A stretch of DNA of 64,000 nt, from assembly GCA_964247055.1 (NCBI GenBank), contig OZ176050.1, forward strand, positions 7,936,001 to 8,000,000, written 5' to 3'. The position numbers were made by a program, and so were the translations under genes. The DNA is from Paragordius varius (lineage: Eukaryota > Animalia > Nematomorpha). Positions 14,101 through 59,100 of this stretch are shown one piece after another (positions within the stretch are counted from its first letter, which is position 1; every line of letters begins with the position of its first letter). The notes under the pieces were generated by a model. That model ran no database searches. It was not told the origin of the DNA and was given only the letters and a program-made list of their open reading frames with translations.

Positions 14101-16351
14101 AATTTTTTATGTAAAGAATACTAGTTTATATCTTATAATATGTACACATGATAATATAATTATTAATGATTGTTTAATAAGCGGTGGTCAGTCATCGTTA
14201 TAAAAACATTCAAAACCAGTCAAACTTAACCTTACATAAATATATAAATAATTTTAATTATACTGGAAAGACTTTCGTTCACATTTGGATTATCGGCTTG
14301 AACTGCTTGTTCTTCATCATATAAATTGATGGATTGTTTGATCAAAGATATGCGGTAAAAATAATTTCGCCAAAACTGTTCTTCATTAATTCTAAAATAC
14401 AAAAACACATCTACGGTTATTATTTTAATCATTTAAAACATTATTAAATCGTCATCATCTGTCTCTTAACTGAAATTGTATTAAATGATTTGCTTTAAAC
14501 GAATTTAAAAAATGCTCCAATGAAATAACCCCTTTTCAAAATCTTTCATGTTTCGAAATTTTCCAATTCAGTCTGCAAATGAACAATGGATTAGAGGTCA
14601 CATCCTTTCACCGATTATTTTCAACATTTGCATTGAATGCATCACACGCAACATTGACAAATCGTTAGGAATAAAAATTGCTGGCAGTACAATATTATCA
14701 CTTCATTACGCTGACAACACGATTCTGCTATCTCACTCACTAAACAACCTCATTACTCCTACACAATTAACCTTCGAATGTCAAAAATTTGGTCTAACCA
14801 TCATTTATAAAAACAAAAATCTTGCACATACAATAAATATAATACAATACCTTAACATTCTTGGACACCAAAATCACTGCAGTACCACACTAACAAAGAC
14901 ACCACAGACATTAGGAGAAGAATAGCAATCGGCAAAGCGAATATGATAAAATACAATAAACTATGGTCAGCTCACGGTTTCAAACCTAAAACCAAAATTA
15001 GTCTAGTCAAATCTCTGATCTTCCCAAACTTGGAGGCTAAAGAAGGGAAATGAAAGATATATCTATGCTTTCAAAATGTGGTGTTGGATTAAAATCGCAA
15101 AGTTAAAATAAGAAACACTGATCCTCGATAAAATCAAACCTGAATATCCCAAAACCATGCCTTAAAATGAGCTCTCTTACTTGGGCTATATCACTAGAAC
15201 CAAAAAACTTAAAGTATCAGCTTATGTCGGAAAAAAGATAAAGGTTTTGATAATTTAACTAAGGAATCCAAGCTAACAATGCAACAGTTGATATACATCA
15301 CACCTAATATCACACAAGCTGGCGTAACTACACTCAAGAAATAGCGACAAATCAATCACCAATCTTAGTTATAACAACATACATAATATTGGTTAACATC
15401 AACCTAACACCAAGCCAAAAGACACATTTATAAAGATAGTCCATATTATTTGTTTTTTAATTGTTTTCAAATCGGTGTAATTCGTAAATCATAATTAAAA
15501 TAAAGATGATATATGCTTTTGTATGATAGTTCTGAAAAATATAAAAAGTAAATGAGTGTATTTGGATAAAAACTAATGGAGTAAAACCAATTGGAGATAT
15601 ATGACATAATCCATTGGTTTATGTAGCACTATTCGGAAAATCATGTGCTATAATAAGGCCTAAAACAATTAATATTGAAAAATTTGCTAAATATTTAAAA
15701 GACTTATATGGGACTATGATTAGAAACGAATGTGGTTGGTAAAGTTAATAACCAAAATTTATAGTTATTGGATAATATGATATCTAAATTTTACATAGAG
15801 TATATAGTTTGCCGTTTAAAATTGCATCAATTGAAAGAAAATAATTATACTTTAATGGAACTAATTTGAAACGCATTTTGGATAATTTTGGATCTTCTTT
15901 TAACAAAAATAAGGCATGTGCAGCATTTTCTACCATTTTAAATAAAAAATCGGATCCATCTGGAGGATTTCTTAGAAAATTACGCGAATCCTAAATTTAT
16001 ATATATTGAATAAACATTTGATAAGGCCAAAATTTGCTTTTTTAACAAATCAGGTTTGGTAGAATCTGCCCATATATTGATATTTTCGACTTGTGCAGCA
16101 TTGTTTTTCTGTTGTTCTTTAAAAAAATCGTCTTCAAACTAAAATAAATAATTTCAAACCAAATCATCTAAATTGGTTTTAATAAGTTGTTTTCCTTGCG
16201 AAATTGTGGTTTTCAAAATTTGTGATACCTTATCAAGTGTTGGTACATTTTCGGTTCTGGATTCAAGATCTTTACATTCGGGTTTGGCGCTTTCTTGTAT
16301 ATCATTATATAAATAATAGGCTTTATCCTTTATGGCCGAAAAAAAATTCAT
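8134..16351 (-). CDS. SYAP1: Synapse-associated protein 1 / BSD-domain protein, 6 exons: 16351-16160, 16138-16016, 15990-15851, 14391-14264, 13963-13895, 8252-8134
   Basis: The spliced translation gives KKQILALSN-DSRNFLRNPP...[39 protein letters not shown] (BSD domain) and a C-terminal LKDYEMV...DEWDQELQDML that resembles SYAP1 ends. All splice phases are consistent. Introns are 21, 25, 1459, 300 and 5642 nt. Confidence 0.88.
8855..8990 (+). mobile_element. tRNA-derived SINE copy
   Basis: Box A-like tggtagagtgg (8858-8868) and box B-like agttcgatac (8911-8920). The body tttttcatcat..gtcagccctgg..aggtgggtgt is shared with 52253-52385. Confidence 0.65.
9270..10490. pseudogene. Inverted pair of decayed coding sequences of unknown family (- copy ~9270-9700; + copy ~10030-10490)
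   Basis: Homologous peptides ENAFVVYNNAPIYKALVVYKL / ENAFVVCENAPIYNARVVGKL, FFNREKA / FYHRENA and RAWLHY / RVWLYY, with many third-position differences. Both copies carry stops or frameshifts. Confidence 0.55.
11113..13499. mobile_element. PIF/Harbinger-derived foldback element: two inverted Myb/SANT-gene arms around a nuclease 3' remnant
   Basis: Arms 11113-11997 and 12603-13499 are reverse complements (about 90% identical by eye) and end in gggccaat/attggccc, flanked by AT on both sides. Each arm encodes a frameshifted Myb-like protein (MTEEN.IIVDILEK...QIRKK...K). The spacer encodes PWLLTPF*NTMIDNEEKFNKLHCSERSIIERVFGQMKTRFPIL...ILHN, the C-terminus of a Harbinger DDE nuclease. Confidence 0.88.
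14520..15350 (+). mobile_element. Decayed RTE-clade non-LTR retrotransposon (RT and C-terminus) in SYAP1 intron 3
   Basis: GHILSPIIFNI..E.ITR...GIKIAG...LHYADN; DIRRRIAIGKANM..YNKLW....TKISLVKSLIFP; IYAFKMWCW. Several frameshifts. Confidence 0.85.
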
Positions 16352-27258: not shown

Positions 27259-28917
27259 ATGCTAGTAATCTCAACTTTGGGCATTTGTGGTGGAGTTATC
27301 ATTGCCATATTTGCGGTTAGCAAAGCTTACAAAAGTATCGTTAGCAATAAAAATAAAACGGAAGATGAAGAAAATTTAACTGACATACAATGGATAACCA
27401 ATCTTTGTTCCACCGCTAAGCCCAAAATCATGCCGTTAAAACTTTGCTCGCCTCTAAGCCCCAAGGGTATCAGTAACCTGTCCAAAAAACGATGCTTTTT
27501 ATTTCCTAATCTCAGTTCACCAACCAAAGAAAATGAATTATTTCGCTTTCGTTTACCGAGTGAACCTACTCTGCCTAGTCCCAGCAATGGGCAACCTAAT
27601 GGTTTGCTGTTGGCAACTTATAATCCCATATCTAACCAAACTGACATGAAATTCATCCCTAAAAAGGAAAAGGATGAATCTCCGATTTCACCAATCTCCA
27701 CATCCTGGGAATATTCATCGTTTATGAGCAGTGGAAATAATTCTAGCGGAGGTTACAGTCGAAGCATTAATGGCTGCACAACATTATCGTCGGAACCTTC
27801 CAGTACCAATAGTAGTTTTTGTGATGAAGGCATCGGAAAGGATATGAAAACTCCAATGACTCCCTATTCAACCAATACTATGTCAGTCATACCCTCAACA
27901 GGTAACACCTTAACTTCCCTCAATCACTCAATGGTAACTTGTTTGCCAAAAAAATATCATATGAACTTGGTATACGAAAAGAATAATAGCATGCTGTTAA
28001 CGGACTTGGATAAAAACCATACTCTTAAAAATGCAACCAGACATTTACCTATGATCAAAACGTTAGTTATAAAAAAACCTAATACTAGAGGAAAGTGTCT
28101 TTTAAATAGTGTGTCTACAAATGCAAAGTCTTGTTTATCGCCAAATAATTCCATGAGACATTTAAAAACACGCAGGTATCGTAATAATTCACATCCGCAA
28201 AAAGAAAAGCTAAAAAGAATTGGGAAACAAAGTGCTATTTCGCCTTTAAATCCCTTTAATCCTTTCCAGGATCAAGATAATCGATTAGGCAAACGTTGTA
28301 AATGCCATGAAACTACTAATCCCATGAAAAACAAGATAATACCTAACAAGCTAACAATGGATAAAACTACTCTCAAATATCCAAACATTCATAAGGTGTT
28401 TGCTTATTTAAGTTTACATTACGATGAAAAAGCAAATGTTTTCGCCATCAACTATCCCAAATTGATAGTAGAAATAGATCCGCGATTTTTTCAACACTCG
28501 CCAATGTCGTTGGATGAATATGGTATTCAATTGACAACTCTACTTTACTATAATGGTAATAACATCAATGCTATGAATGAGGCTGATGACAAATATACCC
28601 CAATGTTAAACGAAAATAGATCAAAATGTATTTATCATTTAGGGCCAGTATTTGGTTACACGTCTTTTAACGAATGTATTAAAGTGATTACAATAAATGA
28701 CACCCAAAATTTTGATTGGAGCTATTCTAAACTCCCGCAATTTCTAGAGATAAGAATGGAACAAAAATTACTTGTAAAACCCAATTTTTCAGAAGCTACC
28801 ACCCCTAATGCATGGAAATTAAATCTTGATTTGGAACCGCTAATGAATTTAATTAGGGATCAAACCATTGATGTTTGTAAGGAAATGCATATTATACCTG
28901 ATGAAACAGGACACTAA
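27259..28917 (+). CDS. 552-aa intronless protein: N-terminal TM anchor, Ser/Pro-rich linker, possible highly degenerate C2 domain (synaptotagmin-like topology)
   Basis: Long uninterrupted ORF in AT-rich DNA. Hydrophobic N-terminus LVISTLGICGGVIIAIFAV followed by basic residues. The C-terminal AYLSLHYDEKANVFAI and HLGPVF loosely resemble the SL.YD and LNPVF motifs of synaptotagmin C2 domains. The ORF is well supported; the product call is weak (~0.35). Confidence 0.75.
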   Translation: MLVISTLGICGGVIIAIFAVSKAYKSIVSNKNKTEDEENLTDIQWITNLCSTAKPKIMPLKLCSPLSPKGISNLSKKRCFLFPNLSSPTKENELFRFRLPSEPTLPSPSNGQPNGLLLATYNPISNQTDMKFIPKKEKDESPISPISTSWEYSSFMSSGNNSSGGYSRSINGCTTLSSEPSSTNSSFCDEGIGKDMKTPMTPYSTNTMSVIPSTGNTLTSLNHSMVTCLPKKYHMNLVYEKNNSMLLTDLDKNHTLKNATRHLPMIKTLVIKKPNTRGKCLLNSVSTNAKSCLSPNNSMRHLKTRRYRNNSHPQKEKLKRIGKQSAISPLNPFNPFQDQDNRLGKRCKCHETTNPMKNKIIPNKLTMDKTTLKYPNIHKVFAYLSLHYDEKANVFAINYPKLIVEIDPRFFQHSPMSLDEYGIQLTTLLYYNGNNINAMNEADDKYTPMLNENRSKCIYHLGPVFGYTSFNECIKVITINDTQNFDWSYSKLPQFLEIRMEQKLLVKPNFSEATTPNAWKLNLDLEPLMNLIRDQTIDVCKEMHIIPDETGH

Positions 28918-32942: not shown

Positions 32943-33926
32943 ATGGAGACTCATAAAGCATATGCATTTAATTTCGACTTGCCCACGCTTGCTGTATTTA
33001 CGGGCGCAAGCGCACCATTAACTCGAACCCTTTCGTCTAAATTTGTTGAACGGGTGAATGCACCTGGCTCAGTTATCATATCTGCTCATACGACAAAAAC
33101 ACTTGAATCTCATGCTCATTATCTCAAAACAAAATGTTATAAACCCAAAAAGATAATTAAACAAAATGATAACGTTGCATTTGGTACAAAAGCCGGATCC
33201 GATTTTTTTGTTCATTGTGCGACCTTGGATTTTAACACGAATACCCACGCGATTGCAGCTACCATTGAACAAGCTCTTGAGTCCGATAACATTCAATACA
33301 AACAGGCCATTCTGTTTCACAATGCTGGGCGCATAACACTATCCAAAAAACCGGAAGATTTTACCGCCGATGAAATTGCAAATTATTTCAAACACAACGT
33401 TACATCCTCCATTTGTTTAAACAATGTCTTCTTGGATTTCATATTGCCTGTTATGCAAAATTCATATGCCCTAACGCGAAAGTCATTTGCATCAACAAAC
33501 GATGCAATGGCTAAAGACAAAAGAAACCTTTTTATTGGCATCACAAGATGTTTTGTAGTCAACATGTCTTCCCCTCTGGCCACTAACCCTCTACCAGGTT
33601 TGGGTTTGGGTTGTGCATCTAAAGCGGCCCGTGAAATGTATTTCAAAGTCGTGGCTTTAGAAAATCCGGATGTAACCGTACTTAATTATTCACCAGGACC
33701 TGTTAAATTTGAAACGTGGCAAACCTTGGTTGATAGCACCCTCAATGAAAAGATTAAGCGGGCTGATATTTTAAAACCTTTATCAGCCAAAAAGAACGAA
33801 GATAGCTCCTCAGAATCTGCATTCGTTACCATAGATAATAATCTTACAGTGCAAACCCTGCTGCACATATTGGGAAAAGGTGGTTATCATTCCGGATCAC
33901 ATTTGGATTATAAGACAGTATTATGA
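32943..33926 (+). CDS. SPR-like: Sepiapterin-reductase-like SDR (327 aa, intronless) with degenerate catalytic and cofactor motifs
   Basis: ILFHNAG, VVNMSS, CASKAAREMYFKVVALENPDVTVLNYSPGP and the C-terminal SGSHLDY match SPR. YxxxK is GCASK here, and TGASRGxG is TGASAPLT. Confidence 0.85.
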   Translation: METHKAYAFNFDLPTLAVFTGASAPLTRTLSSKFVERVNAPGSVIISAHTTKTLESHAHYLKTKCYKPKKIIKQNDNVAFGTKAGSDFFVHCATLDFNTNTHAIAATIEQALESDNIQYKQAILFHNAGRITLSKKPEDFTADEIANYFKHNVTSSICLNNVFLDFILPVMQNSYALTRKSFASTNDAMAKDKRNLFIGITRCFVVNMSSPLATNPLPGLGLGCASKAAREMYFKVVALENPDVTVLNYSPGPVKFETWQTLVDSTLNEKIKRADILKPLSAKKNEDSSSESAFVTIDNNLTVQTLLHILGKGGYHSGSHLDYKTVL

Positions 33927-37190: not shown

Positions 37191-40100
37191 ATGCCACAAA
37201 AATTGCAACTAAAACTGCCCATCAAGGTAAGCGCAAATCAAAGGGTCTTTGTTTGTGTAATACCAAAAAATGATCGATCTGAAAATTAACTTTTGGAATT
37301 AAAACCACATAATGAGTATCAATCATATCTTTATATTAGAACATATGTTCTGGAAGTTGGAAACTGTGAAAACTATCGTTATTTGATTACCTTCGATAAA
37401 GAAACCATTATCCCTTTATTTTTTGAAAGTTTTATTGAACCTAGAACAATTATGGAAAACAAATTGGATACTTTTGGCTTCAAAGGTTTTGAATCATATA
37501 AATAAAGAAAATTTATACAATGTAAATCGATGTGCCATTGTTCAAACTATATTCCTTATTAAAGTTAAGGCAATCAAAACATCCATCAATTATGAAAATA
37601 TGATGCTGGAAAGTGATGAGTATATTTAAACAATAATTTTAGCAATAGTTTTTGCGTATTACAGGTAAATGCATTAATCATCGACACCTGTTTGTACATA
37701 GAAATTTATATATATTTTTAAAATTTGTTTCCAGAATCTGGATGACCCGGCTTTTAATCATGTTTATTTGCGTTGTACATCAAAAATGAACCATATATCC
37801 ATTCAATATTTACCAAATACATCTTATGCTGTATGTTTTTTGTGTAAATTCTAGATGAAAATTGTTTTGTTCAATAAACATTCCAGAAACTTATCATTTT
37901 TTATGCTTGATGATGACCAAATTTTTGGTCATTCTATCCTACCTCTAGTTGCCAATGATCAATTGGATCCCGTCGGATCCATTCACAGTTTGTAATTTTT
38001 TTATAAACACATATTTTTACAAAATTTACCATTTATCACAAAAAATTACAACATTAATGTGGTTTGGCAATTTCACATTTTTTTTAATTTCAATGATATT
38101 GATGCAAGATTGTCAATATCTATAATGTATTATTTAGTAAAAATTAATTGATTCTAGAATTTTCGTTGAGCATGAAAATTCGACGAAATTGTTCAAAACA
38201 GAATTAATTTAAGTTTTTTTTATCAAATTTTAATAATTATTTATAGTTTAATAAAGTTTATGGTGAAATGTTAATTATTCTATACATAAATATTTTGGTG
38301 ATCATAACTTAAACATCTAATCTTGGAGCAAAATACAAAAATTTAATTTGGTTTGACTAAAATATTTGCCCTACATGATTAAATTTGGGCAACGATTGAG
38401 TCTAAATTTTTAAATATATTAATTTTAATACATTTATCATATTTTGTTTAATATACTTTTTTATTTGTACAAAAAAAAGAAGACCACTAAATCTCTCTTT
38501 TACATAATTACCCAGGAAAATTCATCACTCATTATCCATATGATTGCGCTTTATGAATTATTGAAAAAATGAATATAATTTTTTCATTGTCAACTTGTAA
38601 GAATTTTATCTTCGAAGCTAAGACCTTTTAAATCAGAATATTATTATAGTTAGCTTAAGCTAATTTGTTTTGGGCCCTTTAAAAAAATTTGTTAGGAGCG
38701 AATGGGTAGCCGTATAATACTTTTTTTTAAAATTTATCCCGTTTCTGAGTTTTCTACTATTCGATTAAAAAATATTATTTTGTTACTTATCACAACTATT
38801 TTTTATACTAATTTTATTAAATATTCGTGCAATCGTTTATTCTATCTTACTTATTTTTCATAATATGAAAATAATAAATATTTAACGATTATTGTTTCAA
38901 AGTAATATTGTCGATAAAACAGAAAATTATCAAATTAATAAAATTTTATTGTAACTTGTATATAATATAGTATTATTAAAAATATTGGATTTTCGGATAA
39001 ATAATAAACTTTATCTAAAAATTATAAATAAATGTTTAATTTATAATTTATACACTTTGAATTAAATAAATATATATATTCGTACAAATATTTTTCATAA
39101 TTTTATATTTTCTTATGATGTAATATAGTTGAATACAATACAATTAAACCCGTTCCATTTTGCCAAAGGGAATTAATGCTTTTAGAACCGATTTATCAAC
39201 ATTTACCCATGTATCAATTGGAAGTTGGTCACAGGGGCATGGGATCTTCATTTCGAGTTGCAAAGTAAGACTTAAAACACGTATAAAAATTATTTTAAAC
39301 AATATTCAATTTAATATTATAAACTTTAATATAAAGTTAATAAAGTCGAGATAAGTTTTGTATTTTCGTATAAATCCATAAAAATGTTGTTATATTTTTT
39401 TTTAATAACTATTTGTTCTAATGATTTATATCGTGTTACAAAATCAAATTTTCATAATTATATTGAGATTATTATTTTTAAACTCTAACATGTATGCTTA
39501 TTATTATTTACCATGTTAGACCATCAAAAATTTTGGAAAACACTATCTTTGCATTTAGATCGGCATTTGAACAAGTACCTATACATATATGTATATTATG
39601 ATTTGGATCATTTTGAATAAAATATTTTTAAGGTTAACATTATACAATATCTGAAATTATCAATTTATAATAATTTAACCTGTTTAATTTTGACGATTAG
39701 CATAAACAAGGGGTAAAAAATTAGGTTTCAGTTTTAACTATAATTAAACTTTTCTATGAATAAAAAATAAGGGTGCATTATATTAAAATAGAATAAATGT
39801 ACAAAAAATTTTATCCGAAACCTATACTTGGTAAATTAACATTAAATATCATTTCTTTAATTTTTATTAACCCTGCATCTTAATATAATTATTTTTCAAA
39901 AAATAGTCGATTAAAATTATAATCCGTCACTTCCGATCATCACAATAAATTGAAGATTTGATTGTTATAGGGTTTATTATATTAAAAATTTGTTTCCATC
40001 TTTCATTTTTAATTTAACGCGCGATATAAATAGGTTATTTGAATTACTTTAAACCAATATATTATATCAGGGACTGAGATTTGTGGAATTCGATGTACAA

Positions 40101-42988
40101 GTTTCCAAAGATCTCATACCATTAATTTTTCATGATTTTTCGGTCGTCACTTGTTTGGAAAATAATGAAAACGCCCTAATTCCAAAAGAAAAAATTAACG
40201 GGGAAATCCAATCACCCTCTACATACAAATTGATGGGAATTCACCAGTTAAACCATAAGGAATTGATTAGTTTAAAGGTAAAATATTTTGAATTGGGTTT
40301 GTCGATTATTTATATTAAATATTTTTTGTATCATTAATACAATTATTTGGATTATACATTAATTCATCAGAATATGGCATATTTTCATATTCAGGTTAGT
40401 TAAAAATATATTTGTAACAAAATTTCGACTTTTTTCTGTAGTCTTAATATTATTATGTTGACTTATATTGATAAATTGGATTTTATATTCCCATTGTTCT
40501 TATCATGATCCTGCGTAGCGTTAGTTCTTGTTGAAGTTAATAATGTTATTTATCTTATTGTTATAGACAAAATGATTAAAAGGGTGTTTAAAAGTTTTCT
40601 TTTTTAAATTTGTATTTTTTTATAACAAATTCTAATTATTTAGCCATATTAGTTTGCCATTTTTCTATGATTCTAAATTATTAATTTTAAAACCTAAAAT
40701 TTATATAGTAAATGTAAGATTTATTTTTACTCTATCAATTGCCGACCTATAGGCCAAGTATATGATTTCAATTTAAATTTAAAAAGGTTTTAACTATATG
40801 CCCATTATTTTCACTTGAAATATAGAAAATATGCTTTAATTACACTTAACAGTTCAGATTTTTTATCATTTCGGTTTTTGAGGTATATATATATATATAT
40901 AGCTGTATCATGAAACTTTGCTGGACTATTCTGGGAAAGAATTAGAAATCATGAAAGGTGAAAAACTTTTACCCAATGCCAATCAAAAATTGGTAATTTA
41001 TTTAAATAAATAGACGTTCATTTTTCTTTATAAAAATTAATATAAAATATATATTCTAAATAAATATGTATCAGGGATTGCCAAACCTAAAATAAATTTT
41101 TTGTCCCCCGTTTCGGCATTATTGTTTTTGATAAAATGGTTCCCTTTTTAATTTTACAGATGAAATTATTTTTATATAATGTGAATTCGAATACTACTTT
41201 TCAGTAAAAAACCCAGAAGTGTTTAAAATACAAAACAAAATAATAAAAGGTTAATACTAAAAAAATAAGAAATATTATTTTGAACTGATGTTATACAATG
41301 TTTAATAACTAATTTCCTGTTTTATTTCTTGAATATTTAATTTTAATATATAACTTATTATAGATTCGTGATTTAACCTATAATGGTAACTCAACAGACG
41401 TAGAAGTTTTGGAACCCGTGTACAATCATGAAGAAATAATCAATGGTATAATAATTTTGTTTGCATATATATCTAGTTAAAAAAATCCGTTTAATTGGAA
41501 CAAATCAAATAGCATAACGTGAAAATGTATATGTTTATTATAAATATATAATTGATGCAAAAAAGCAGAAACTAAATTGTTTAAGCGTCAATATGTATTA
41601 TTTATCAATGAAATTTATTAAAAATAAAATTATTTTATTTACATCCAAAGATAATAATAATGAGTTAACCAAAGCTATAGAAAGTGAATTTTGCGCTTTT
41701 CCTTCGTTACGAGCGGTTTTAGATGAATTACCGGAACAATTGGGTTATAACGTCGAATTCAAATATCCCATGCCATTTGAAGTAAATATCTAATTTTATC
41801 GTTTTCTTTTTATATAATTATCCTATATGGGCCAAATAATTTCGGTTTCATTTTTTTGAATAGTTTATAATTATTTTTTTAAATATAACTATATAAACCA
41901 CATGAATTTTTTGATTTTTCGTGGATATACAGTATGAGTAAGTATATATTGCTAGAATGTTATAAATTATTGCCAAATGGCATAAAGAGAATTATTATTG
42001 GCTAATAATAGTAGTTGAAAAAAATAATTATACGCCAATACTACTGTCCTTTGTTGTATATATTATTCGGCAATAAATAACTTTCTAGCAATGCATACTT
42101 ATACTGTTACTTTTTTGATTGAAATAAAATATGAATTATTAAAGTATCATTTATTTTATTGAATTTTAAAAAGAAACAAATGACTTCCGTTTGAAACCGC
42201 TCCTATGGTTTTTAAAACGGGTGCAAAAAACCAATTGTTTCTTGCTAATTGAAAACTGTATTTTTATTAGGATGGAACTCATGAGAGCCTAGATGGAAAT
42301 TATATTGAAATGAATTTGTACTGCGATTTAATTTTGAAAGAAATTTTTCGTTCCGATCAAAGACCCGAGAATATTAATCGCCAGTTAATATTTTCATCAT
42401 TTCATCCGGATATTTGTTTGATGTAAAAAATTTACTTTTTTTAACCATAATCATGAAAATAATAATATAATAATTAGATACATTCCCAATGTTTTTTAGG
42501 TTGTCACTTAAACAACACCGATATCCTGTTATGTTGTGTTTTGATATTTGCAAAGACTTACACCAAAATGATCTCAAAACAACCTATTTTATCGATTCCC
42601 GCACTCACAATTTGAAGCATGCCATCAATTTTTGCGCAGCCAATTCTCTTGCGGTATTTTCACATCTTATAACATTTAAACAATATATTTTAATATTGTT
42701 TCAAAAAAAAATATTTTTAATTTTAACTATTGTGGTTATAATTTAGCTTAAAATTAACAAGGTTGAAAATAGATTCACTCTTACAAGCAATACAATACTT
42801 TAATATTTTTTTGATAGGGTCTAAGTATTAAAAGTAAAACGCTTTTGATGGACCCAGAAATCGTAGAAACTTGCAAAGATCACAATCTCAAACTCTTAGT
42901 TTGGGGCTCAGAAACATCTGATGAAACCTGTCGTGCCAGTCTCTTTAAAATGGGAGTAAATGGAATAATATATGATAAGATATCATAG
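37191..42988 (+). CDS. GPCPD1: Glycerophosphocholine phosphodiesterase (degenerate CBM20-like N-terminus plus GDPD domain), multi-exon; the 5' exons and the 37990-39185 interval are only partly resolved
   Basis: Exons 39186-39264 (LEVGHRGMG), 39520-39574 (ENTIFAFRSA), 40071-40277 (FVEFDVQVSKDLIPLIFHD), 41364-41445, 41651-41781 (FPSLRAVLDELPEQLGYNVEFKY), 42271-42422 (LIFSSFHPDIC), 42500-42653 and 42818-42988 (GVNGIIYD) are phase-consistent. The N-terminal YRYL...ESFIEPRTI...DTFG resembles GPCPD1. Confidence 0.88.
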
Positions 42989-43104
42989 ATATGGCCAATT
43001 AATGCAAAACAAAAAATTAACCAACAATTATTTTTGTTATATATATATATATATATAATGCAAATTTTTATGTAGTATTTATTGAATCAAATATATATTA
43101 ATAA

Positions 43105-45417
43105 TTAAGGCACAAATGTACTATACCACATAAATCCACTCAGCATAGAGAGACCAAACCTATTATTTTATTATTTAATATATATAAATATAATTTAAGT
43201 AGTATTACAAATAGATTTTATCAAATTTTTATCTATACGATAGATAGATCTATATACAATTAAATAAATTCTTATATATTATAAGAACAATACTCAATTA
43301 TCATTTTTGGTTCTTTAATAAAAAATGTAGCGTAGTTCATAAATTTTAAGCGATGCGATTCATTGTTCTTAAATAAAATATTGTTAGTATAAAATGATTC
43401 GAATTAAAACAAACCAATATTTACCAAGTTATTGCATAATTCAAATGTTCATTCCGTAATTGAATGTTTGTTTGACCAGTAATAGGCGGTGGTAGAGTTA
43501 AAGTGTTTTTATCATTGATTAATGCTTTAGATTTTGTTGTACTAGGCTCATTCGTTTCAGTGCTTCCATCAATCATATCGATAAAGAGTGGATATGTTTC
43601 CAAGATATCGGCCATAATCTCATCTCGTTTAAGGAATATGCGTTGAGTTAACATTTGATTAGTTACTTCTTTCGATCGTGTTTCGGGATGTCGTATTAAA
43701 CCATGAATTTTTATGGCGTGATTTGGCGTTGCACCATTGATGATTTGATTTGCGTATTCTAATATATAAAATTATATTATTTGTAACTTTGTAGCATAGA
43801 ATCTGGGATCCATCCACGATTAACCAAAAATTTGAGGCTGTATATAAATTAGATTTAAATGAATGAAATATGTGAATATATGTTATGATATATTTGCCAA
43901 GTTATAAATTTGATAAATTCAAAATCAAGTAGTTTTAACCGTAAAGATATTTTTGGTGTTTCATGAGAAAATAATAACTTAAATTCTAAATTTCAATTAA
44001 TTGGTAATGACATTCGAAATTATAGAATGACTGGAACATCTGTGGTCCGCAAATTTGTTAAAAAACCAGATTTAAAAAAATATTATTTTTATAGCAGTAG
44101 TGAAAAGCAAAATTTATTATAAATTAATAAGCTGATTGTTAGGACATATAATGTTATATCTTAATAAAATTCTTAATTTTAAAAATATATTGCTTCGGCA
44201 ACTAGGTAACTACTCAAATTTTAAAATAAAGTATTTATCTTTTGTTTAACTGAGACCTAATATGCGAATTAGAAAAAAATGAGTTGTTGATAGGCCCGGA
44301 TTTGACTGGTTATTAATGCATTCAAAACACATTAATCACCGTGACTGCTTATAACGTGTCAATTATATAAATATGTTAATCAGATAACGAAAATATAGTA
44401 TAATGGTGTGAAACATAAATTTCAAATGTAAAATTAATTGAGACGAATTAATTTTTTTGCTGTATAGCATAATAAATCGATTGTTAAAAAGCGGTTGACA
44501 CCCAAACTGGGGCCCAAATAGTTTAAACCAGGAATACTCAACCCGAGGGCCGCATTGGGCCCTAAAAACGTTTTTAATGGCTTTGAAGATATGTATCAAT
44601 TTTGAGTAAAATTATCTTCAAATGTGTCAAAAAATTATGATTATCGGTATTATATGGCCCTTGAAACCAGGTAAATGTATATTGATGCCCTCTCAATTTT
44701 TTGGTGATGCCATTGGTTTAAACCAAAATTATGCTGTTTGTCAAATGAAACAGGTCGTTTTAAAAACTCTGAACATAAACCAATATAGTTTTTGATAAAC
44801 CGAGTTGGCCCCAACCCATAAAAAGGTTCCTACTAAAATATCAGCGGCGACGTGTAGTGGTAATCGTGCTTAAGAAACTTAATTCTACGTTGACTTATAA
44901 GGTTACTCTTTATTTAAAATAGATAAAAATAAATTTAAATAAAAAAATTACTTAGGTTCGTGCGATGATAAAAACGGTTGGATAACATGATATCCAATTT
45001 TTTTGGATGTTGTAATAAGTCCTGAACTATTATTAGAATGCGAATCTTTAAGAATCCTGGGACCAATAAATAAAACATTTGGTAAAAATAGGCCCTCCGT
45101 GTATACATGCGAGTATTCAGGTATGGTATTGAATTCATCTTTGCTAAAATATTATTATAAAATATACAAATCATCAATTAATTTTGGTTGCTGACGGGAC
45201 AATTTTTCTAACTGGTCTATCAAATTTAATTTCCATTTTCTACGCTTTATTTGCCAACAACCCAAACCAAATGTTACTACTGGTATTGACTAAATTAAAT
45301 AAACTATACTAGTAAAGTTATTGATCTATAAGACCATAGAGATTTCGGTCGTTTGCTTCTATTTATGACAGAATATAGTCTTCTGAAGTCATAAATAATT
45401 TTAAATTTTATTACCAT
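43105..45417 (-). CDS. SURF1: SURF1 cytochrome c oxidase assembly factor, 6 exons: 45417-45310, 45289-45168, 45143-44952, 43837-43788, 43758-43425, 43159-43105
   Basis: The spliced translation gives [82 protein letters not shown]. Introns are 20, 24, 1114, 29 and 265 nt, with all phases consistent. Confidence 0.93.
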
Positions 45418-45444
45418 ACTTTGCACTTTTTTGTACGTAAAAAC
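45418..45444. promoter_or_regulatory. 27-nt interval between the divergent SURF1 and NUP62 start codons (putative bidirectional promoter core)
   Basis: CAT at 45415-45417 and ATG at 45445-45447. The interval contains an imperfect palindrome TTTT-G-TACGTA-A-AAA centred on 45434-45439. Confidence 0.5.
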
Positions 45445-46136
45445 ATGAGTTCAGGATTCAATTTTGGTGCTCCCTCAAGTATTTATTTTATCAATTTAAC
45501 CAATTTTCAAAAAACATTTTTTTACCCCATGAATATGATAGGTTCTGGATTTAGTTTTGGTGGAAGTGGATTTTCTTTTGGAAAAAGCGTAGCAAGTTTA
45601 TATATTTTTATTTATTATAAGGCACAACTACTAGTAATATAGCATTTGGAGTTCCCTCTACAACTAGTAATTACATATATAATATTAGCTGCTGCCTCTT
45701 TTGGATTATTTAATGCGCCCATTAATTTTGGGACCGCGCCCGGATCTTCGAATGTTTTCGGTACATTGAATATATCATTTTTTTAGGTCAAAATCAGTCT
45801 CAATCGACTGGTCAAACTTTTTCTTTTACAAATACAGGTATATTACTCATTGCACATTTATAATTGATTATAAGAATGAAAATGCATATAAATGCTTTAA
45901 AAAGCTGTTTAAAACGACTAAAAATTATTTATATGTTCAAAAAATTGCATAACAAAATAAGAATGACTCAATCTATCTCCAGAATATTATAACTTTTAAT
46001 TAATCATTCCTAATTGTTTATATATATTTTAAAATTTGATTTGGAATTTTATGCATGATTGGTTTTATATGTAATATAATTTAAATTTATATGCAATTTT
46101 TTCTAAGTTTTTGTATTTTTGGTTGATCAAGACTAA

Positions 46137-46174
<38 letters not shown>

Positions 46175-49100
46175 TGAATTTTGTACCTAACATATCTAAT
46201 CACTAAATAATTTATTATTACAATATAAATTAAAGCCAAACATTAAACTTTATACTTATATAATTACCGGTATAAACGTCAAATTTAATTTTGAATTTTC
46301 CTATTGATGCGGAAATGTTTAAATTGTAAACTTACTTTTTTTACCCATATCTTTTTTCCTTTTCATTGATTCTTTCCATTTACAACACATGATAGTTGTC
46401 ACAACAACGACTAGTAGTAGTAATACTTTATTTGGCTCCGGACTTTTCAGCAGTTTTTCCTCCAATGTCGCATCTGCTCAATCAACGACAGCGACCCTTA
46501 ATAATCCAACGATTGGGGGATTTTCATTTTTGAATACCGCGCAAACGACTACAAGTAGTCAATTCTCATTACCATTGGCTAAAACTAACACTTCCATTTT
46601 ATCCGCCCCCATGGGTGGTTTTGGACAATTTCCATCTGCCACCACTTCTACTTCTTCTACGTTTAATTTTGGAAAAACTTTAACGACGGGTGGAGGTTTT
46701 TCTTTCAATCCACCTTCCAACACTGCAGTAACAACAGCAAATGGTAATTTAAATAGTATTATAAATTTAAATTAGTTGTTAGTTTCGAGGTTTTTTTGAT
46801 AATTACTTAAGCAAGCATTATGGATATTAAAATGAAAACTTACAATATTATATAATTCAAATAATATCATAGGATTCTTTGCTTAGTGATTATTTTATGG
46901 ACATTCATGAATTTAAGGTACTTATTGTTTATTATGATGTAATATAGATCATCATTAAAATTGTATAATTCATGTATTTTTAAATGCCATGGATCAAATT
47001 GTTTAGTTGTTGGTTTATAAAATCATTCATATTAATATGGTCATTACATTTCATAATTGCTTAAATATTTGTTTTTTTTACAATTATTTGAAGCAAGAAA
47101 TGCGTTGCAATTACGTGCTTCGAAAGAGTTTGATATTAAAAAAAACTACCATTATAGCGATAAACAAGCAAGAAATGGTTTGTCCACATTTCAATTAAAC
47201 AGCATTATGTTTCTATGAAATGCTTGCTAAAATAAAACAGGCCAAATTTAACTTTGATAATACTCTATTAAGTTAGAAATGTACTTAAAATAACTGTAAT
47301 CATCGCAGTTTATTAACATTTTGCGACACATAAATTTAGCACTATCGTTATTACACTTGGTTGGTAAAATTAAATAATGTTTTTGTATTTGAAAAAATCA
47401 GTTGTGCCTCCATCAATTGTTGCCATTACCACAAATTCTACACCAGGCTTATCATTTTCTTTCTTAAATCCATCTACTACCACTGCTCCATTAAGTTTGG
47501 GGATACCGGGTCAGAACCTAAACTTTGGGAATTTGAGCGCAACGCAAACAGTCCCGAATGTTGGTATGCTAATTTTTTGACTTATTTTCAATAAGCACGC
47601 CTTATGACCCCTATAATGGGGAATGTATAAAGGCCCTTTTTTAAAAATACTTTCTTTGATATTTTGATAAGTAATAATTTATTTTTTTTAATTTAATTAT
47701 CATCAAAGCTGTTGATCTACCATGATGAAAAAAATAATATATGATAAAATATTATTTTCAATACCTATTAACTAATTAATTAGTAAGAAGATACACGCAA
47801 CTTTTGGATGTTACATATAAAATTAGGTCATTGTTATAGCCTGAGAATCACCATGATCTAACTAATTTATAAGGGATTTTTATACAATTCCGATTTTTAT
47901 GGGAGACATACTGTATTTTTTTTAATTGAGTGGGACGAGGGTTCGTAATGTATTATTTTTATAGCATTACAATTAATTTTTAAAAAAATGCACATTTGGT
48001 TATTTCATATCACAATGGCTTCTTTGTGATTTTTCTTTCTTTTGTCCATTAACGGTTCGTTTGTGATTTTTTCTCCTATATAAGTAATATCAATCATGAT
48101 TTTGTTCATTTTTTAATTTAATTTTGATTGTTTTGTATTATATACATATATATATTTCTTAACTAATCTCCTGATAATGCCTATGGCAAAAATTTAAGAA
48201 TCAATAGTTTATATTTTATTTTCATGTTATTTTACGACGATTCCCACATCATGTACTGTATTTTTATTAATTTTTTGATATATAATATATATGTATATAT
48301 TTTTTAAATGCATTAGGTCAACCGTCGTTTTCATTTCCGAGTATGGCACCATCCACAAATGTTCAATCAAAAGGAGTTGGCACTACAACATCATCACTCA
48401 CTTTTTCTTTACCATCGGGTAAATTTTACGGGTTGATAGTTTTAAAAAATACTATAGTTGTTTTAAAAAGTTCAATATACTATTCTTTCGGCACATGTGA
48501 AAATATATATCAATAATTTTTACATGAATAAATATTGTTATTATTAGGCTCATCGGGTTTTAGTTTTGCTCCAAATGTTACGACTACGAATTTAAGCACT
48601 ACCACAGGATTAACTTTTAATTTAGGAGCTAGTTTATCCAATAAACAACCAGTGATCACCACTCAAGGTTTAATTTTACAGAATGTGTTTTATGTTAAAA
48701 ATTTTATTTTAAATAGTTGATTTTAAGTTAGAAATCATGTGTCAACCGATTTATATAAATTCATTTTTTACGTTAAATATTGACTCATCGTTAAGATTTA
48801 AGAATATAGTAATCAGACTTGATTTATTTTTTATACATGCAAAAATATATTTTACAAGAATTTTTTACAAGTGCATTTAAAAGTGAAACCTCACCTCAAT
48901 CTATGCACCATATATTCGAATATGATATAGATTCACTCTTTTGAAGTTAAATACTGCCAAAAGTTTTATATAAATTTTAATAACCTATATGTTTTAATCT
49001 CTTCTTGATTATCCGGAATTTGTAATTTTAGCTATACCATCAACCACAGTATCATTTCTTCCAACATTCAATTTGGGTGCGGGCCTATCATCAACCCAAT

Positions 49101-52100
49101 CTTCACAATTGACGACTGTTACAAGCAGTGCTACATCGAGTACACTGCCACCTTCAAGTTTTAATGTTATACCTCCTTTGGGGGTATCGCAGATCAGTAC
49201 ATTGATTCAAGTTTCAAAACCACAAACTATAATTTCAACTGCTATCCCTAGTATGATAAAGACGGATGTACCACCAACCCTCAGTAAATTTTTAATATAT
49301 TTTGTATAATATTTACGAAATTAATTTCGAAGGAATGATGTTAGAGTAGGTAAGGCATTGGATTCTACTATGCATATGAGTATCTCATTGACCGAAGCTT
49401 TCATGTCACTTTTATACGCCCTTAAGCCTGTTGGAATTTTTCTTTTTTTCTATCTCTAGATTTTCTAATTGTATTATGGAGTTCTAGATCTTCTCAGATA
49501 GTGGATTGTGTTTACGAGGATGTTTTATTATTAGGTAAGCTGATTAGTTTTATCCAGTTAGATTCTTGGAATCTATATATGTAACCAGCTCAAAGTAACT
49601 CGACTTGCGGTATTGAGTAATCCAAACATAAGGTTTGTGAAGGGCTTTGGATTGAAACTCTAAATATTTGGATTATGTGCGAAAAAAATTACATCTAGAC
49701 TTATTTGAAGTTGGCCATTTTTCAGTCCCATATAGAATAACAGGAGCGGCATAAAAATCAAAGCACTTCACCCGAGTAAAGATATTAAATTTACTTCATA
49801 ACCTGTAAAAATCTTTATCTTGCATATTTTTTCTTAGGTAAAACTATGTCATTTTAATGTAATAAATTTATATAACACATATTATGTAGAGTTTGCACCA
49901 ATCATTAGTAGTGGTGTTCTTCCCACCGTCTCACAGTCTGTACCCGTTTCAAGGTAGTATAAATTTGATTGTTTTTATGTATATTTTTCAATATAAAACA
50001 TATAATTCGTATCTCAGTGTAACATTAAACACCACTTCAAACCCACCCAAAGTTGAAAGCAAAAGTACCAAACCCGATGAGACTGTCACTGTGAAAACGG
50101 AATTAACTTATCGTGATTTGCAAGAATGCATGAACAATTGGAAAAGTGAATTGGATTCGATGGGGAAAACATTTGCTGATCAAGCCACTAGTTTGAAAAC
50201 CTGGGAAGCAATGTTACGATCGAATGGTGAAAAGGTTATTTAATTATTTTTTTATAAAATTAATTTGACAAAAAATATAGTATAAAAAGCGGCAAAAATG
50301 GGGATCAAAAAATAAAAGTTAATAAATTATATATTTTTCGATGGCTAATAGCTTTAGGATAATGAATGTATATTATAATGATTGATGCGGTTAAAATACT
50401 AGAAAAAAAGTTATTTCAATTTTTTTATTAGCTGAAACAAAAAATCGCATTTTTTCGCATATTAGGTCAAATAAAATTAAATGCTATAGATGAAAACGTG
50501 TCAACTAAATTTTATTTGTTTTAATATAGCATAAGAATAATTTTAAATGTAAAACATTATTAACAAGATTTTACATTTTTTGGACGGTCTCATAATGATT
50601 TTTTAGAATATTAGCTAAAAAATCCCACTCTGTCGTCATATTTGAATATTTAAATCTCATCGTTATGCGGTTTATTAAAACAATTATACATTAACTCTAT
50701 ATATAGAAATTACCCAATATATTGCCCTCTAGAAAATTAGCCTTATATAATAAAATATTTCGATATTTTGCACCAAAGCGGAAGCTGCGTATAATTTTTA
50801 CTAAACATCCATTATATATAGTACTTACTTTTTCCACACAATACGATGCAGAAAAAAACGATCTTTCATCTCAGTTTTTTGATTTAGGAAATTTTTTTGC
50901 CCGAATATCTTTATTATATAATTTTGGCGCCATTTTTATTTTAATACCGGCTTTAGGGCATAAATTTCATCAAATTAAAAAACTGGTCAATAAAACTTTT
51001 ATTAAATTTTATGGAAAAGATATTTATAATATATACATTTAATGTTTTGTAAAAATACTACACAGCTTCCTTTTAGGTGCAAATTATCGCAAATTATTCT
51101 TTTTTATATAAGGCTTAATTTTTTTGAAAGCGATATATTGGGCAATTTCTATATCCAGAGTTAATATATGATTGTTTTAATAAAATTTAATATCTTTTAC
51201 CGCGCATTAATAAGTTTTTATGATTCAAATTCGACGGCAAGATTTTTTTAGCTAATATTCTTATCTTTCTGGGACTTTTCGAAAAAATGTAAAACCTTTG
51301 TTGATATTATTTTTTTAGATTTATCATTCTAATTAAAACAAATAAAATTTAGTTGACACGTTTTCATCTATTGTAGTTAATTTTATTTGACCTAATATAA
51401 AAACGCGAATTTTTGATTTTGGCTGTTATTAAAATAACTTTTTTTCAAGTACCGCATGCATCATTTCAATGTTCATTATCCTGAAGTTTTTATCTATCGA
51501 ATGATATAGAATTAATTAACATTTATTTTTTGCTGCACACCGTGTAGTAAACAACTATTAATTTATATACGATTTGGGAGGGGGGGAGTACACAACTATA
51601 CTATATCGGAAAAACCGTCTAGAAAAGCATTAAAAGATTTATAATATTATTTAATGATTATAATTTTTTACATTCTAGATAAGTCAAATGGGTTTGGAGT
51701 TGAAGGCTTCTGATATTGATTTGACCAAAATTGAACAGCAAATCAGTTTTTTGGAATCTCAGGAGTCAGAAATTGAAAAGACTTTAATTCCTTTGGAAAA
51801 GGCATATCTAATTAATCAAAATGATGGCGATGTATTAGATGGTGGAGATGGTTTTAATACAGCATATGGGGATTCGGCTTCGAATTTTAATGAACGAAAA
51901 CAAATGTAAATTCGTTTTTCATTATCTTTTTTTTAACTTAATAATTACCTTTACTTTCCTTACATGAAATTTGTATAAAAATATATTTTTATATTTAATG
52001 TATAAAAAAATCCTTATTAAACGTGCATGGGGCTGATAAAATATAATATCCGCTTTGACTGCTTATAAATGTGGCTATTTACTATCATGAATAGTCAATT

Positions 52101-53186: not shown

Positions 53187-56100
53187 TTACGTTTTTTCAT
53201 TTTTTTTCTTGTGGCTTGAAAATATATAATGGAGTCCCAAAAATGGTAACATAAAAAAGAAAAATATATTTAACAAAAAAATTTTAAATTTGCTATATTT
53301 CTCTTCTTGCTTCTTCGGTGATCTATATGCAATTTTAGATAAAAATTTAATTGGATTTTTAGGGATAGAATATAATTCTTTTCTTTTTAAATTTTATAAA
53401 ATGGTGTATATAAATATATATATATACTATTTACAGTTCAAATTCACCCTAAAATAAATTATGTGTTTTCCTATATTTTTTATATTTTTAAGAAAATGAA
53501 ATTTGTTTAAAATTAATATATTACTGAAAAAATAATAAACTATGCCATAAAAATATATTTCATATTAATGATGAGTTATATCAGCCCGAAAAAAGATAAT
53601 TTATTTTAGGGTGAATTTGAAATGTTCAAGGGTGAATTTGGATTAATGGTATATATCTTTAATTTAGAATAATGTAATTTACTTGGTTTTCTCGGGAATC
53701 AACGGTTGTAGGACGAGATCATTATCTATTTGTGGTTCCGTAATTTTTTCTAAAATGGATGATAAGCCCCAAATTCCGATTGGCTTAAAAAATAATCCCA
53801 ATATTGCCTTAATAATTCCTGAATTTATATATAAACAACATTAAAGAGGGTTATAAAGCTACAGTATTCATTATAGCGGTTTATAGGCTTATGAACTTTG
53901 ACTCATGATGTGCATTTATTTTTCACGTTTTAATCTTAAAATTTACAAAGATCATCCAAATCAAATTTTATTAAAAAATAAGTTTAATTTTTTTTCAATC
54001 AGTTAATAAAAGTTTTAGGGATTATTACATACTACTTTATATTTTAACTTGACTACAGAACAACTAAATTTTTGGTTTTCAGAATTTGCTTAATAATTAC
54101 GCTATCAAATTAGAGCAGCGTATGGTAACAAAAAAACAAATTTTTTTCCTATGTTTCAACATTAATCTGCCAATTTAATTATCGACAATTTGTTATGCCA
54201 TACGCTACTGTATATGAAAAATTTAAACATAAATAAATATACCTTTTAACAGTGTCAAACCTATTATCGTTATTAATGCTGCAAGGCCAAACCGGAAAAT
54301 TCCGTCAAACCCGAATGACTTATCAATCACATTTTTTAATTTTGGGTTATTGATGCCCGCAGGGAAAAAAGATTTGTAAGCATTACCAAACGTTTGTGAA
54401 ATGGCTTCTATATAACCACTCTTTGTAATATCCAACAATTCTTTCGTATAGCATGTAAAGAGTTTAGAACTGTTTCCGCACTAATGATATACAGCAAATT
54501 TATGAGTTTACAAATAATAATTAATACTGAGTTTTTTTCAATGGTAAAATTTATTCATTTCGATGTTTATCGTATATGTATAATGTATCTTTTTTAAAAT
54601 ATGTTTAATTAATTAAATATATACCATGCATTTGCATAAGTGTTCGCAGACACATATTTCTCCAATTTTAATCCAGAATGATTTTTGGGATACAACAACG
54701 TTTCCATCCCTAAGGTGGGCTATAATTTTATTTTACTCAATTCATTACCTTTGCAAACGATGTGTTCATTCTTTTTTGCTGTCATATTACAAGATTCATC
54801 AAATTCTATCTCTAAACTTATTCGACGACTTTGTCCTGGGGCAAAAATTTTGTATACGCTTGCATTCCAAGTCAAATTATGAGAACATGAGTTTAAAGTC
54901 AACGTAAGCCCTAATTCCACTATACCTCTGTTTGTTACCGTAAAATGAACGTGAACATTGGTTTCATGGGGTTTTTCAACAATTACGCTTGTAATCAAGG
55001 CTGAATTTCTAAACATTAAATTAATAATTATTTATGATTGGGGTTAACTATTATAAACTAAAGTTTATATAGCTATTACAGATGCAATAACCAAACGCGA
55101 GAAACAGCTGATTATCAAGTTTTAACTAACTCTAAAAGAATATCTTTCTGGATTCATAAATTTTTGTAATAATTTTTAATTTTCCCAAAACCTATAGGGA
55201 TCTAATTATATTAGTTTTATATTCCCTGTTTGTATAAATCAAATCTTATTTTATAATAAACATTAGAAATAATACATAGATTAATGATAAATGGATAATA
55301 GTATTTTTATTGGTCCATTAAAAATTATTTTAATTATGACTATCTCGTTTACCTTATATGGCTAGTGGTGAAAATATCACTAAATATCTGAATCTTCGCG
55401 TGTGTCATAACCGATTTTTGATAGATATACACTAAATAATTGTTCCAAGTTTGATTGGATTTATAAGTCAAATTTTTTCCGTGTGATCCATTATAAAGAC
55501 CATTGAATAAGGGTAGTGATTGATAATTCCCTTTTACCAACATATTAGGATGTAAATATCCTCTTTCGGATATAAAGTTTTTTGAACTATTTTGATTTAG
55601 CTTTTGTTTTGCCTATTTATAACACAATAACTTTAGTTATGAGATGAGAAAGAGGAGTAAAAATTTAAGTATAAATAATAAATTATCTCTGCTTGAGACA
55701 TTTTTTCCTAATTTAGACGTTTAATAAAATGTTATTATGCAATTTATGCTCATTAATATTAGTTTGCCATGGTAGCCTTATCCACATATTTGGATTAATT
55801 ATTTATATTAGAAATTATATTTAAACAAATATTCCGACATATAGTATTCAACATAAAATTTAATTTACCTTTTCCATTGTCCAAATATCCAAAGGTTGAT
55901 TTTGAAAACAGCTGGACAAAATAATTAACTTCATATAGGTTAAAATACATATTTATTATTAACAAATAAATATATTACAGTCAAAGTTTTTTGCTTTATA
56001 AATTATATAGGGTCTTTCCATTAAAAAATTATTTTTGACCAATTCTTTAATCAAAAGTGTATTAAGCCAGCGAAGTTTATATTATAGAATTGACTTCGTT

Positions 56101-59100
56101 AATTAAAAATTCCATCAATTATTAGAAATTGCATTTATTTTACTCAATAATCCATTATTGGTATATTTTATAAATAAAACCCATTAGAACAACGGTTATA
56201 TATCATTAACCGGGAAATCTGAAAAAAACCGTTATGCCCACAGATCAATATTTCTCTCTGATTCTGACTCCGGATTCACTTATTTTATATAGAAATTGTT
56301 CCTAACAAAATGAGTCCGTTCTATGGTTCTTTGGTCAAATAGTTGTGATTTTCATTTTTTTGGAAATTTACAGTCAGTCTTATTATGTTGTTACTACAAT
56401 GTGATAAAAAAGGTTAATTAATTATACTTTTTGTATCAGACAATCTAAAAAATTATAGATTTCAAACAATGTTAATTTTTAAAAAAATAAAAAGCTATTA
56501 TGTGGACCCCGATTTTGGTTCTAAAAACGGTTAAGGAGTCATTTTTGGCTTCAAAACGGATCCAAACGATTCCTCAGTTCCAATGCCTTCCTTGAACATT
56601 TATCTCTGATTTTAATAATCGATTTGGTGGGTAATAGGACTGAGTTTGGATATGAATTCAGTCAAACCGAGATTCTCACGATTAATATGAAAAAATGTCG
56701 ATTTTATATTTATGTATACAAATGCGATTGCTTTAATTCAAATAAGCATCCCCACCGCCTATTATTTTTCCCGTTAAAAAAAGTTTTTCCATTACTTATT
56801 TTGCCCAAAAAAATTTGCTCATCCTGGTTTAATTTACATACCTTTGAGGTTGTAATTCGCATTTTTGGAGCTGATTTTGAAATGCGTGAAACGATACACC
56901 AATTTTGTTACATGACATTCCTGTTCCGTCAAAATCGGATATTGGAATAACAAGTGATCCCTTAATCCCATCCTAATATTTAGTCACTGTAAAATCATGT
57001 AATTCTATTCAGATTGATCAAATTTATGATAAATATGGTAAATTGTTGTATGTCTTCCTGCATAAAACTTATATTTCTTAGATTACTTATAACATAGATG
57101 CCGCCTAAACTTAAAAATGATATGTTAATTGAGGTGTTTGTAATATATACTCGTATTTGTGGGATAGGCATACTCGAATGGCTTAAAGGTAAAGGAATAA
57201 GTACCCTCTCCAAACCGGGTTTTAACGGGAGAACATTATCGTTGGACATTAACACTTGACTGATTTTGAAAGATTTTACCTTCATGTAAAAGATTATGAT
57301 TAGCGAGATACAGTAAAAATTGATTGAAACGGAAAAAACGTAAAAATATTAAGGAAAATATATTTTTTTAAAAGCCGCTCTATTTTTCAAACTTAATTTT
57401 TTACAATATAACATATTGTTTTACAAGGCAAAGTAGAAAATCGAAATATAAATTGGCAACATAATCAATTATATATTTTGAAAGTGAATAAATAATTTAT
57501 ATAGGAACAAATAAAAAGTATAGTTGTCTTTTGAAAAAATATTTGTCTATATATTTTTAAATTTTGTCCGCATAATTTAAGTTTTTACTGTATTTAACTC
57601 AAAATTCAATTTTAGTTCTTACCTTTGTCCCACTATCAGTTTTAACAATGGAAGAATTTGTACTGAATATCAAAGTTTTATTAGCTGTAACGTCAAACCA
57701 AGACGATGGCGTAGTACCATTTTGCATCTTCTTAATGAATACTTTGGCAAAAATATTTTGTTCCAAGAATGGCTCTTGAATATCATACGTGGCATACCTA
57801 GGAGATTAAATATATTATCAGAAAATTTCTTATATGCTCAAAAGGTTACAAAAATATAACACTTAAAGATATACCATTTCCCAGTCTAAATAAACGTTTT
57901 CCCAGTCAATCGAAACATTTTTCCAGTCAATCGAAACGTTTTCCCAGTCAATCGAAACGTTTTCCCAGTCAATCGAAACGTTTTCTCAGTCAATAAAAAC
58001 ATTTTCCCAATCAATCGAAACATTTTCCCAGTCAATAAAAACATTTTCCCAGTCAATCGAAACATTTTTCCAGTCAATAAAAACATTTTCCCAATCAATA
58101 AAAACGGTTTTATTTTTGATGATAAATATCAAACAAGACATAAAATTAACTTTTAACCATTATCAGCGTAATGTTAGGATATTATTTTTCATGAAAAAAC
58201 AATTATTGAATGACAATTTTCACGTATATTCTAATGGACAATCATTAATGACCTATTCTTTAAAAGTTATATTTTTTGTAATTTGAGATGTTTATAAGAT
58301 AATATTTTTTATTTTATTGATGGTTCGCATTATATGCGGCACTTACAAAATCTATAGTTACGGATGAAATATTAAAAATAAAAATCTCAAAGGTCATTTA
58401 ACACTTCATATTGGATCTTAAACATAAATTTTACCCTAATTTTATAATATTTATCATTTGATTCATCGGGTGCCCAACGCGGAGTGCCGAGTATCTTTGT
58501 GCGGCCCACTAAAAATTTAGAAATCCATATGCAAAAATATGCCCACAAAATCTTAGTAATATTCATATTCCTTACGCAATTACTCTGAATGAGTCTATTA
58601 AATTGGTAACAAATTAAAAAAAATTGTTAAATTTTTGTATTTTACAGTCTTATGTCTAATCGAAAAATTATTTATGAAATATATCAAATGCGGAAGACCG
58701 TGCTTTTTGAGTAATGCGGCCCGCGAAGCCATTTGGTTGGACACCCCTGTTTTAGTCAAATCTTATTAAATATTTTTAAAATTATATATTTTTTCCGACA
58801 GTAATTTTATGGAAAAACCTGACATATTTAAAAACTGTTTTGAAGGTTCGGCAAATATTAATGCGAACCATCAATAAAATAAAAAATATCTTATAAATCT
58901 CAAATTACAAAAAATATAACTTTTAAAGAATAAGTCATTAATGAGTGTCCATTGGAATATACTTGGAATTGTCATTCAATAATTGTTTTTTCATGAAAAA
59001 TAATATCCTAATATTACGCTGATAATGGTTAAAAGTTAATTTTATGTCTTGTTTTGATATTTATCATCAAAAATAAAACCGTTTTTATTGACTGGGAAAA

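Follow-up and report, generated by a model that had tools for sequence, protein, structure and literature searches.

Twelve introns of only 20-29 nt were found in five genes (SURF1, NUP62, SYAP1, GPCPD1 and HAP2) of the window, i.e. the whole stretch of 64 kb of DNA that was analysed. These micro-introns are very probably GT-AG introns of the major (U2-type) spliceosome that shrank to this size in one horsehair-worm lineage; they are judged to be real and would probably represent the third animal lineage with introns below 30 nt. An earlier note on this DNA had proposed spliceosomal micro-introns lying beside long introns, and the analysis supported this reading, most strongly for SURF1, where position, phase and splice-choice score all favour it. 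All 12 segments were read as introns from DNA alone, on the evidence of reading frames, positions, composition and variants.

Reading frames, composition and splice signals

The coordinates of all 12 micro-introns had been given exactly in the earlier note, and each segment started with GT and ended with AG on the strand of its own gene (Table 1). Removal of the segments yielded an open frame in 12/12 cases, and retention led to a stop codon within 15 codons in all of them, including the three with a length that is a multiple of three. The SURF1 junction read as had been claimed once the 20-nt intron was removed (ITLL fused to the next exon). That removal restores conserved frames was borne out for the three SURF1 introns by comparison with homologues; for the other nine it was the open frame only, or the conserved frame in part, that was restored. 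The identity of the genes was confirmed by searches with individual exons, in Pfam for SURF1, BSD, GDPD, Nsp1_C and HAP2-GCS1 and in PDB for SYAP1 and HAP2. Open multi-exon models were obtained for SURF1 (complete), NUP62 (11 introns), SYAP1 (4 introns) and GPCPD1 (13 introns).

Table 1. Micro-introns and selected longer introns of the five genes, with positions in the window
Feature	Position	Strand	Length (nt)	Phase	Remarks
SURF1 gene	43105..45417	-			6 exons, 286 aa
SURF1 intron 1	45290..45309	-	20	0	top score among 97 splice choices; branch A possibly at -6 or -7
SURF1 intron 2	45144..45167	-	24	2	best of 120 choices; in-frame stop if kept
SURF1 intron 3	43838..44951	-	1114	2	46 nt in Gordionus
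SURF1 intron 4	43759..43787	-	29	1	best of 23 choices; position common to 0/5 species
SURF1 intron 5	43160..43424	-	265	2	39 nt in Gordionus
NUP62 intron 1	45479..45541	+	63		three indel variants
NUP62 intron 2	45596..45621	+	26		variant with 3 nt inserted, in runs X3 and X5
NUP62 intron 3	45667..45688	+	22		frame and composition only
NUP62 intron 4	45761..45786	+	26		1-nt deletion variant (25 nt) in runs X4 and X5
SYAP1 intron 1	16139..16159	-	21	0	in-frame stop if kept
SYAP1 intron 2	15991..16015	-	25	0	following exon matches PDB 1x3a from its first residue
SYAP1 intron 3	14392..15850	-	1459		contains a reverse-transcriptase fragment
GPCPD1 intron	37486..37507	+	22	1	frame only; weak AAG end
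GPCPD1 intron	37620..37642	+	23	2	frame only
GPCPD1 intron	37831..37854	+	24	0	frame only; in-frame stop if kept
HAP2/GCS1 intron	54720..54748	-	29	1	frame only; near the 3' end of the gene

The GC content inside the 12 micro-introns was 7.4%, as against 32.5% in the flanking exons. For a given window position, the chance of a GT followed 20-29 nt on by an AG of the fitting length class was p ~0.005-0.006, and the chance of two such GT-AG sites at ancestral intron positions was about 3e-5. A U12-type donor was absent (0/12), all segments were GT-AG and position +3 was always A or T, which places them among U2-type introns. The donors were GTA in 7/12 and GTT in 5/12 micro-introns, and GTA in 19/22 long introns. 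The 3' ends of the micro-introns were T-rich, with an A at position -7 in 10/12. This excess is weak, as its p of 0.003 is uncorrected for about 10 positions and long introns also frequently had an A there (11/22).

Such very weak splice signals would also suit a reading in which the introns are real and yet poorly spliced, as in microsporidia, so that they would mostly be retained and serve chiefly to dampen expression. A median splicing efficiency of about 25% is given for the tiny introns of microsporidia in a study cited in PMC13644364, and the 5' location and the stop codons of the segments would fit control via decay. Poor splicing is unlikely, since SURF1 and NUP62 are core genes with three micro-introns each and would be left with scant full-length mRNA; it would moreover be a variant of the reading as shrunken spliceosomal introns and not its denial.

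Two size classes of introns

In total, 33 introns were modelled in SURF1, NUP62, SYAP1 and GPCPD1, HAP2 being omitted because it was not fully modelled and NUP62 intron 12 because its acceptor is uncertain. Eleven of these introns measured 20-29 nt, none 30-62 nt and 22 measured 63-1459 nt; the micro-introns are a size class apart from the introns of 63 nt and more. All 11 ranked fourth or earlier in the intron order of their own gene, compared with 5/22 of the longer ones (Fisher p 2e-5; four genes, introns not independent). The exception to this 5' clustering was the 29-nt intron of HAP2. A separate short, 5'-clustered peak beside long introns, as known from flukes, was therefore present in four genes. 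The micro-introns themselves, lying in genes of an animal, fall below 30 nt; the median intron length was 164 nt (33 introns, four genes) and thus unlike the genome-wide median of less than 30 nt that marks myxobolids and dicyemids. Long introns had been claimed to lie beside the micro-introns, and those of 63, 64 and 70 nt as well as introns in the kb range were indeed found, while one said to span 5.6 kb could not be located.

Ancestral intron positions in SURF1

Intron positions of SURF1 were mapped by exact spliced alignment of the annotated proteins to their own loci in five other species (Gordionus, Owenia, Pristionchus, Amphiura and Anabrus). The 20-nt intron shared its alignment column and phase 0 with introns of Gordionus (43 nt), Owenia (269 nt), Pristionchus (164 nt) and Anabrus (8997 nt), and the 24-nt intron shared column and phase 2 with introns of all five species (40, 259, 111, 1202 and 28279 nt). 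Both would accordingly be shrunken ancestral introns, as judged from position and phase. The 29-nt intron had no counterpart in the five species and its position is therefore lineage-specific. The last SURF1 intron of Pristionchus mayeri was 43 nt long.

Splice choice was assessed by scoring every nearby GT/GC-AG pair against an HMM profile built from 120 SURF1 proteins. The claimed introns scored top with 185.5 bits, the next choices reaching 177.9, 173.0 and 158.7 bits, the last of these being the runner-up to the 29-nt intron. The lead of intron 1 over an 80-nt alternative was only 7.6 bits, because the upstream region, a presequence, is poorly conserved. As an alternative, the units excised might be introns of usual size (48-80 nt) that enclose the segments and use other GT/GC donors. 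Longer choices with an open frame do exist in SURF1 (intron 1, 80 nt; intron 2, 48 or 57 nt; intron 4, 59 nt), and the same genes also contain introns of 63-77 nt. Each longer alternative, however, scores lower and deletes residues that have counterparts in homologues, and none fits the ancestral column and phase, whereas the claimed introns do. The stretch of 7% GC, moreover, starts at the claimed donor. Excision of longer introns is thus quite improbable.

Sequencing reads and variation

The search of sequencing runs revealed none on record as RNA that contained this DNA, and the runs X6-X10, presumed to be RNA, shared 0.00 of its sequence words. The runs X1, X3, X4 and X5 were compared over 40180-46130; all consisted of genomic DNA and no joint was seen at any intron. 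A contig of X1, which may be the source sample, covered 43321-45350 with 0 differences in the SURF1 segments, and a contig of X3, from another study, covered 45053-45329 with 0 differences. The SURF1 micro-introns are consequently no artefact of the assembly, as the segments are carried unchanged by runs from two studies. No spliced product of the source species was recovered with Gordionus SURF1 as the query. Among the indels listed (12 of 42), 12/12 were intronic under the gene models used (coding share 33%, p ~0.008). Two of these lay inside NUP62 micro-introns, one in each of the 26-nt introns (Table 1), and the NUP62 micro-introns tolerate length variants. Coding SNPs were mostly synonymous (11/14 among those listed), so the genes look functional.

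That the segments are unspliced insertions in dead or mis-assembled genes is highly improbable: the in-frame TAA in the 5' region of GPCPD1 would suit it, but the recurrence of the SURF1 segments in two studies and the synonymous character of most coding SNPs speak against it, and random insertions would not give GT-AG ends at ancestral positions. Some introns are excised by a nuclease and a ligase instead of the spliceosome, and those of the XBP1 type are of similar size to the micro-introns. Excision of this kind (IRE1/XBP1-like or tRNA-like) can be virtually dismissed here, since all micro-introns are GT-AG and their positions match spliceosomal introns of other animals. In the five micro-introns tested, moreover, no stable RNA fold was detected (z -0.9 to +1.1), which ruled out structured non-spliceosomal introns, and the stem-loops at both cut sites that characterize IRE1/XBP1- or tRNA-type introns were lacking. 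An Rfam search of the window gave no match.

Other observations on genes and repeats

SURF1 (start at 45417, minus strand) and NUP62 (start at 45445, plus strand) form a head-to-head pair whose start codons are separated by 27 nt; their 5' UTRs and promoters must therefore be tiny, unless they extend into the neighbouring gene. In Gordionus, the 10 kb upstream of SURF1 contained no FG text resembling NUP62. The first ten introns of NUP62 (45445-49284) are all in phase 1, and the exons of its FG region are therefore symmetrical. GPCPD1 contains a 22-nt exon (37643-37664) between the 23-nt intron and a 70-nt intron. The gene also shows a single in-frame TAA at 37287-37289, after the likely start at 37191 and before the first micro-intron, outside the region of the reads compared; this may be due to a base error, a null allele or an unrecognised intron of 60-90 nt. 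Nothing useful emerged when the 5' exons of GPCPD1 and the HAP2 exon beside the 29-nt intron were searched against PDB, Pfam and Atlas. The gamete fusogen gene HAP2/GCS1 is a multi-exon gene at 53200-61600 (minus strand), with a Pfam E value of 3e-10 for one exon.

An intron of HAP2 harbours a 1.5-kb element (57863-59344) with inverted arms of 470 nt, each containing a tandem array of 21 nt. A MITE-like short repeat of very high copy number, with inverted arms of 30 nt, lies in a GPCPD1 intron (41925-42100) and had a summed contig depth of about 130,000, as against 400. Around a DDE_Tnp_4 transposase fragment (12252-12575), a 900-nt inverted duplication was observed (11111-11997 and 12603-13501, 85% identical). 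Two long open frames, 27259-28914 on the plus strand (552 aa) and 62409-63998 on the minus strand (at least 530 aa), had no Pfam match.

Affinity to Gordionus and proposed history of the introns

Orthologues from the window grouped with Gordionus, the sole nematomorph available. The intronless CNDP2 shared 55-57% identity with three proteins of Gordionus, compared with about 43% for other animals, and in a tree both CNDP2 copies of the window grouped with Gordionus with support of 100/100 (on a long branch; no myxozoan or dicyemid was included). The last exon of SURF1 was closest to Gordionus, and the SPR gene was 57% identical to Gordionus, with 27% for the next match. A myxozoan origin, initially suggested by a GC content of 27% and by HAP2, was discarded in view of the CNDP2 and SPR results. 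The source is very probably a nematomorph other than G. montsenyensis. In Gordionus, the CNDP2, SURF1 and SPR genes are all on one chromosome, and GPCPD1 and SURF1 are arranged tail to tail as in the window. The SPR-like (sepiapterin-reductase) gene at 32943-33926 (plus strand) is intronless, as it is in Gordionus. The two intronless CNDP2-like dipeptidase genes, 2872-4515 (minus strand) and 6391-7989 (plus strand), lie head to head and are 71% identical; their products have hydrophobic N-termini and are possibly secreted. Gordionus has intronless CNDP2 copies of its own, which were duplicated separately.

SURF1 of Gordionus montsenyensis (XP_065315943.1) has AT-rich introns and shares four of its five intron positions with the gene in the window. 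All five are 39-46 nt long, which is at the low end for animals, whereas the shared ones measure 20, 24, 1114 and 265 nt in the window; there, one intron is lost and one, of 29 nt, is new. Because all five Gordionus introns are so short, the simplest history would start from a short-intron ancestor. In the lineage studied here, 5' introns would have shrunk further and 3' introns would have grown through transposons. Comparison of one gene in two species suggests this direction (short ancestor, 5' shrinkage and 3' growth) and does not fix it.

Recognition of the micro-introns would take place across the intron (intron definition). The signals would be a donor reduced to GT(A/T) and a 3' end rich in A/T, where a branch A would be placed 6-8 nt from the end of the intron and a pyrimidine tract is almost absent. 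In the 20-nt SURF1 intron, candidate branch As occur only at -11, -7 and -6. The lariat loop would comprise about 13-15 nt, and the motif TTAAT favours -6, i.e. a loop of 15 nt. A tight lariat appears feasible, since loops of 10 nt occur in Stentor (PMC9505925). As failed splicing gives an early stop in every case, unspliced mRNA would be cleared by nonsense-mediated decay. The spliceosome may be specially changed.

Significance

It is conceivable, and on balance doubtful, that a horsehair-worm lineage is the third animal group, and the first among ecdysozoans, in which 20-29-nt introns form a genome-wide class with an empty gap at 30-62 nt, in a genome that is not compact and is rich in transposons. 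One spliceosome would then handle two size regimes, with the help of changes to U2 snRNA, SF3b or branching factors that are peculiar to this lineage. If so, these changes could be pinned down by comparison with Gordionus, where introns are about 40 nt long. A close relative with introns of 39-46 nt at the same sites is a natural comparison for the question of what determines how short a spliceable intron can be. If introns below 30 nt arose a third time, in a repeat-rich nematomorph with kb introns in the same genes, intron shrinkage would be uncoupled from genome compaction. Usual minimum-intron settings would be expected to break gene models here, and the reported gene loss in nematomorphs may be inflated by such broken models.

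Comparison with known short introns

Among 51 animals, introns below 30 nt are reported only from myxobolids and Dicyema and are linked to genome reduction, the median intron of myxobolids measuring 22-27 nt (Hadjez et al. 2026, PMC13644364); nematomorphs are unmentioned in the main text of that paper. The sequenced nematomorph genomes are repeat-rich and comprise 200-300 Mb (10.1101/2024.06.11.598342). Flukes have 5'-clustered microintrons with a peak at 37 nt beside introns of 3 kb (PMC6530080). The list of tiny-intron lineages in the earlier note was therefore incomplete, missing the myxobolids of PMC13644364 and the fluke microintrons. Taken singly, both the size and the two-class layout thus have precedents, in myxobolids and flukes. 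The Gordionus genome paper and the nematomorph comparative preprint never mention introns, and the literature search, which did not extend to the Current Biology papers on nematomorph genomes, revealed no report of such short introns in nematomorphs. As far as the literature was searched, the lineage and the combination of size and layout are without precedent.

The ciliates (Stentor, 15-16 nt, PMC9505925; Paramecium, about 25 nt) resemble the window in their AT-rich GT-AG introns, with a tight lariat and a branch A that lies about 6 nt before the intron ends, but they are no animals and have almost solely tiny introns, whereas the window mixes tiny and long ones. Opisthorchis felineus (PMC6530080) likewise has a separate short class that makes up about one-third of the introns and is 5'-clustered, together with kb introns and the repeat-rich genome of a parasite; its peaks at 37 and 90 nt are, however, above the 30-nt line, in contrast to the 20-29 nt observed here. 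The introns of myxobolids and Dicyema (PMC13644364; Zverkov et al. 2019, PMC6543705) are alike in being GT-AG introns below 30 nt with a reduced donor and a weak A before the AG, at ancestral positions in a parasitic animal. Their median intron length is 22-27 nt and their genomes are small (75 Mb in Henneguya); the micro-introns of the window, in contrast, constitute a third of the introns counted, belong to an ecdysozoan and often have GTT donors.
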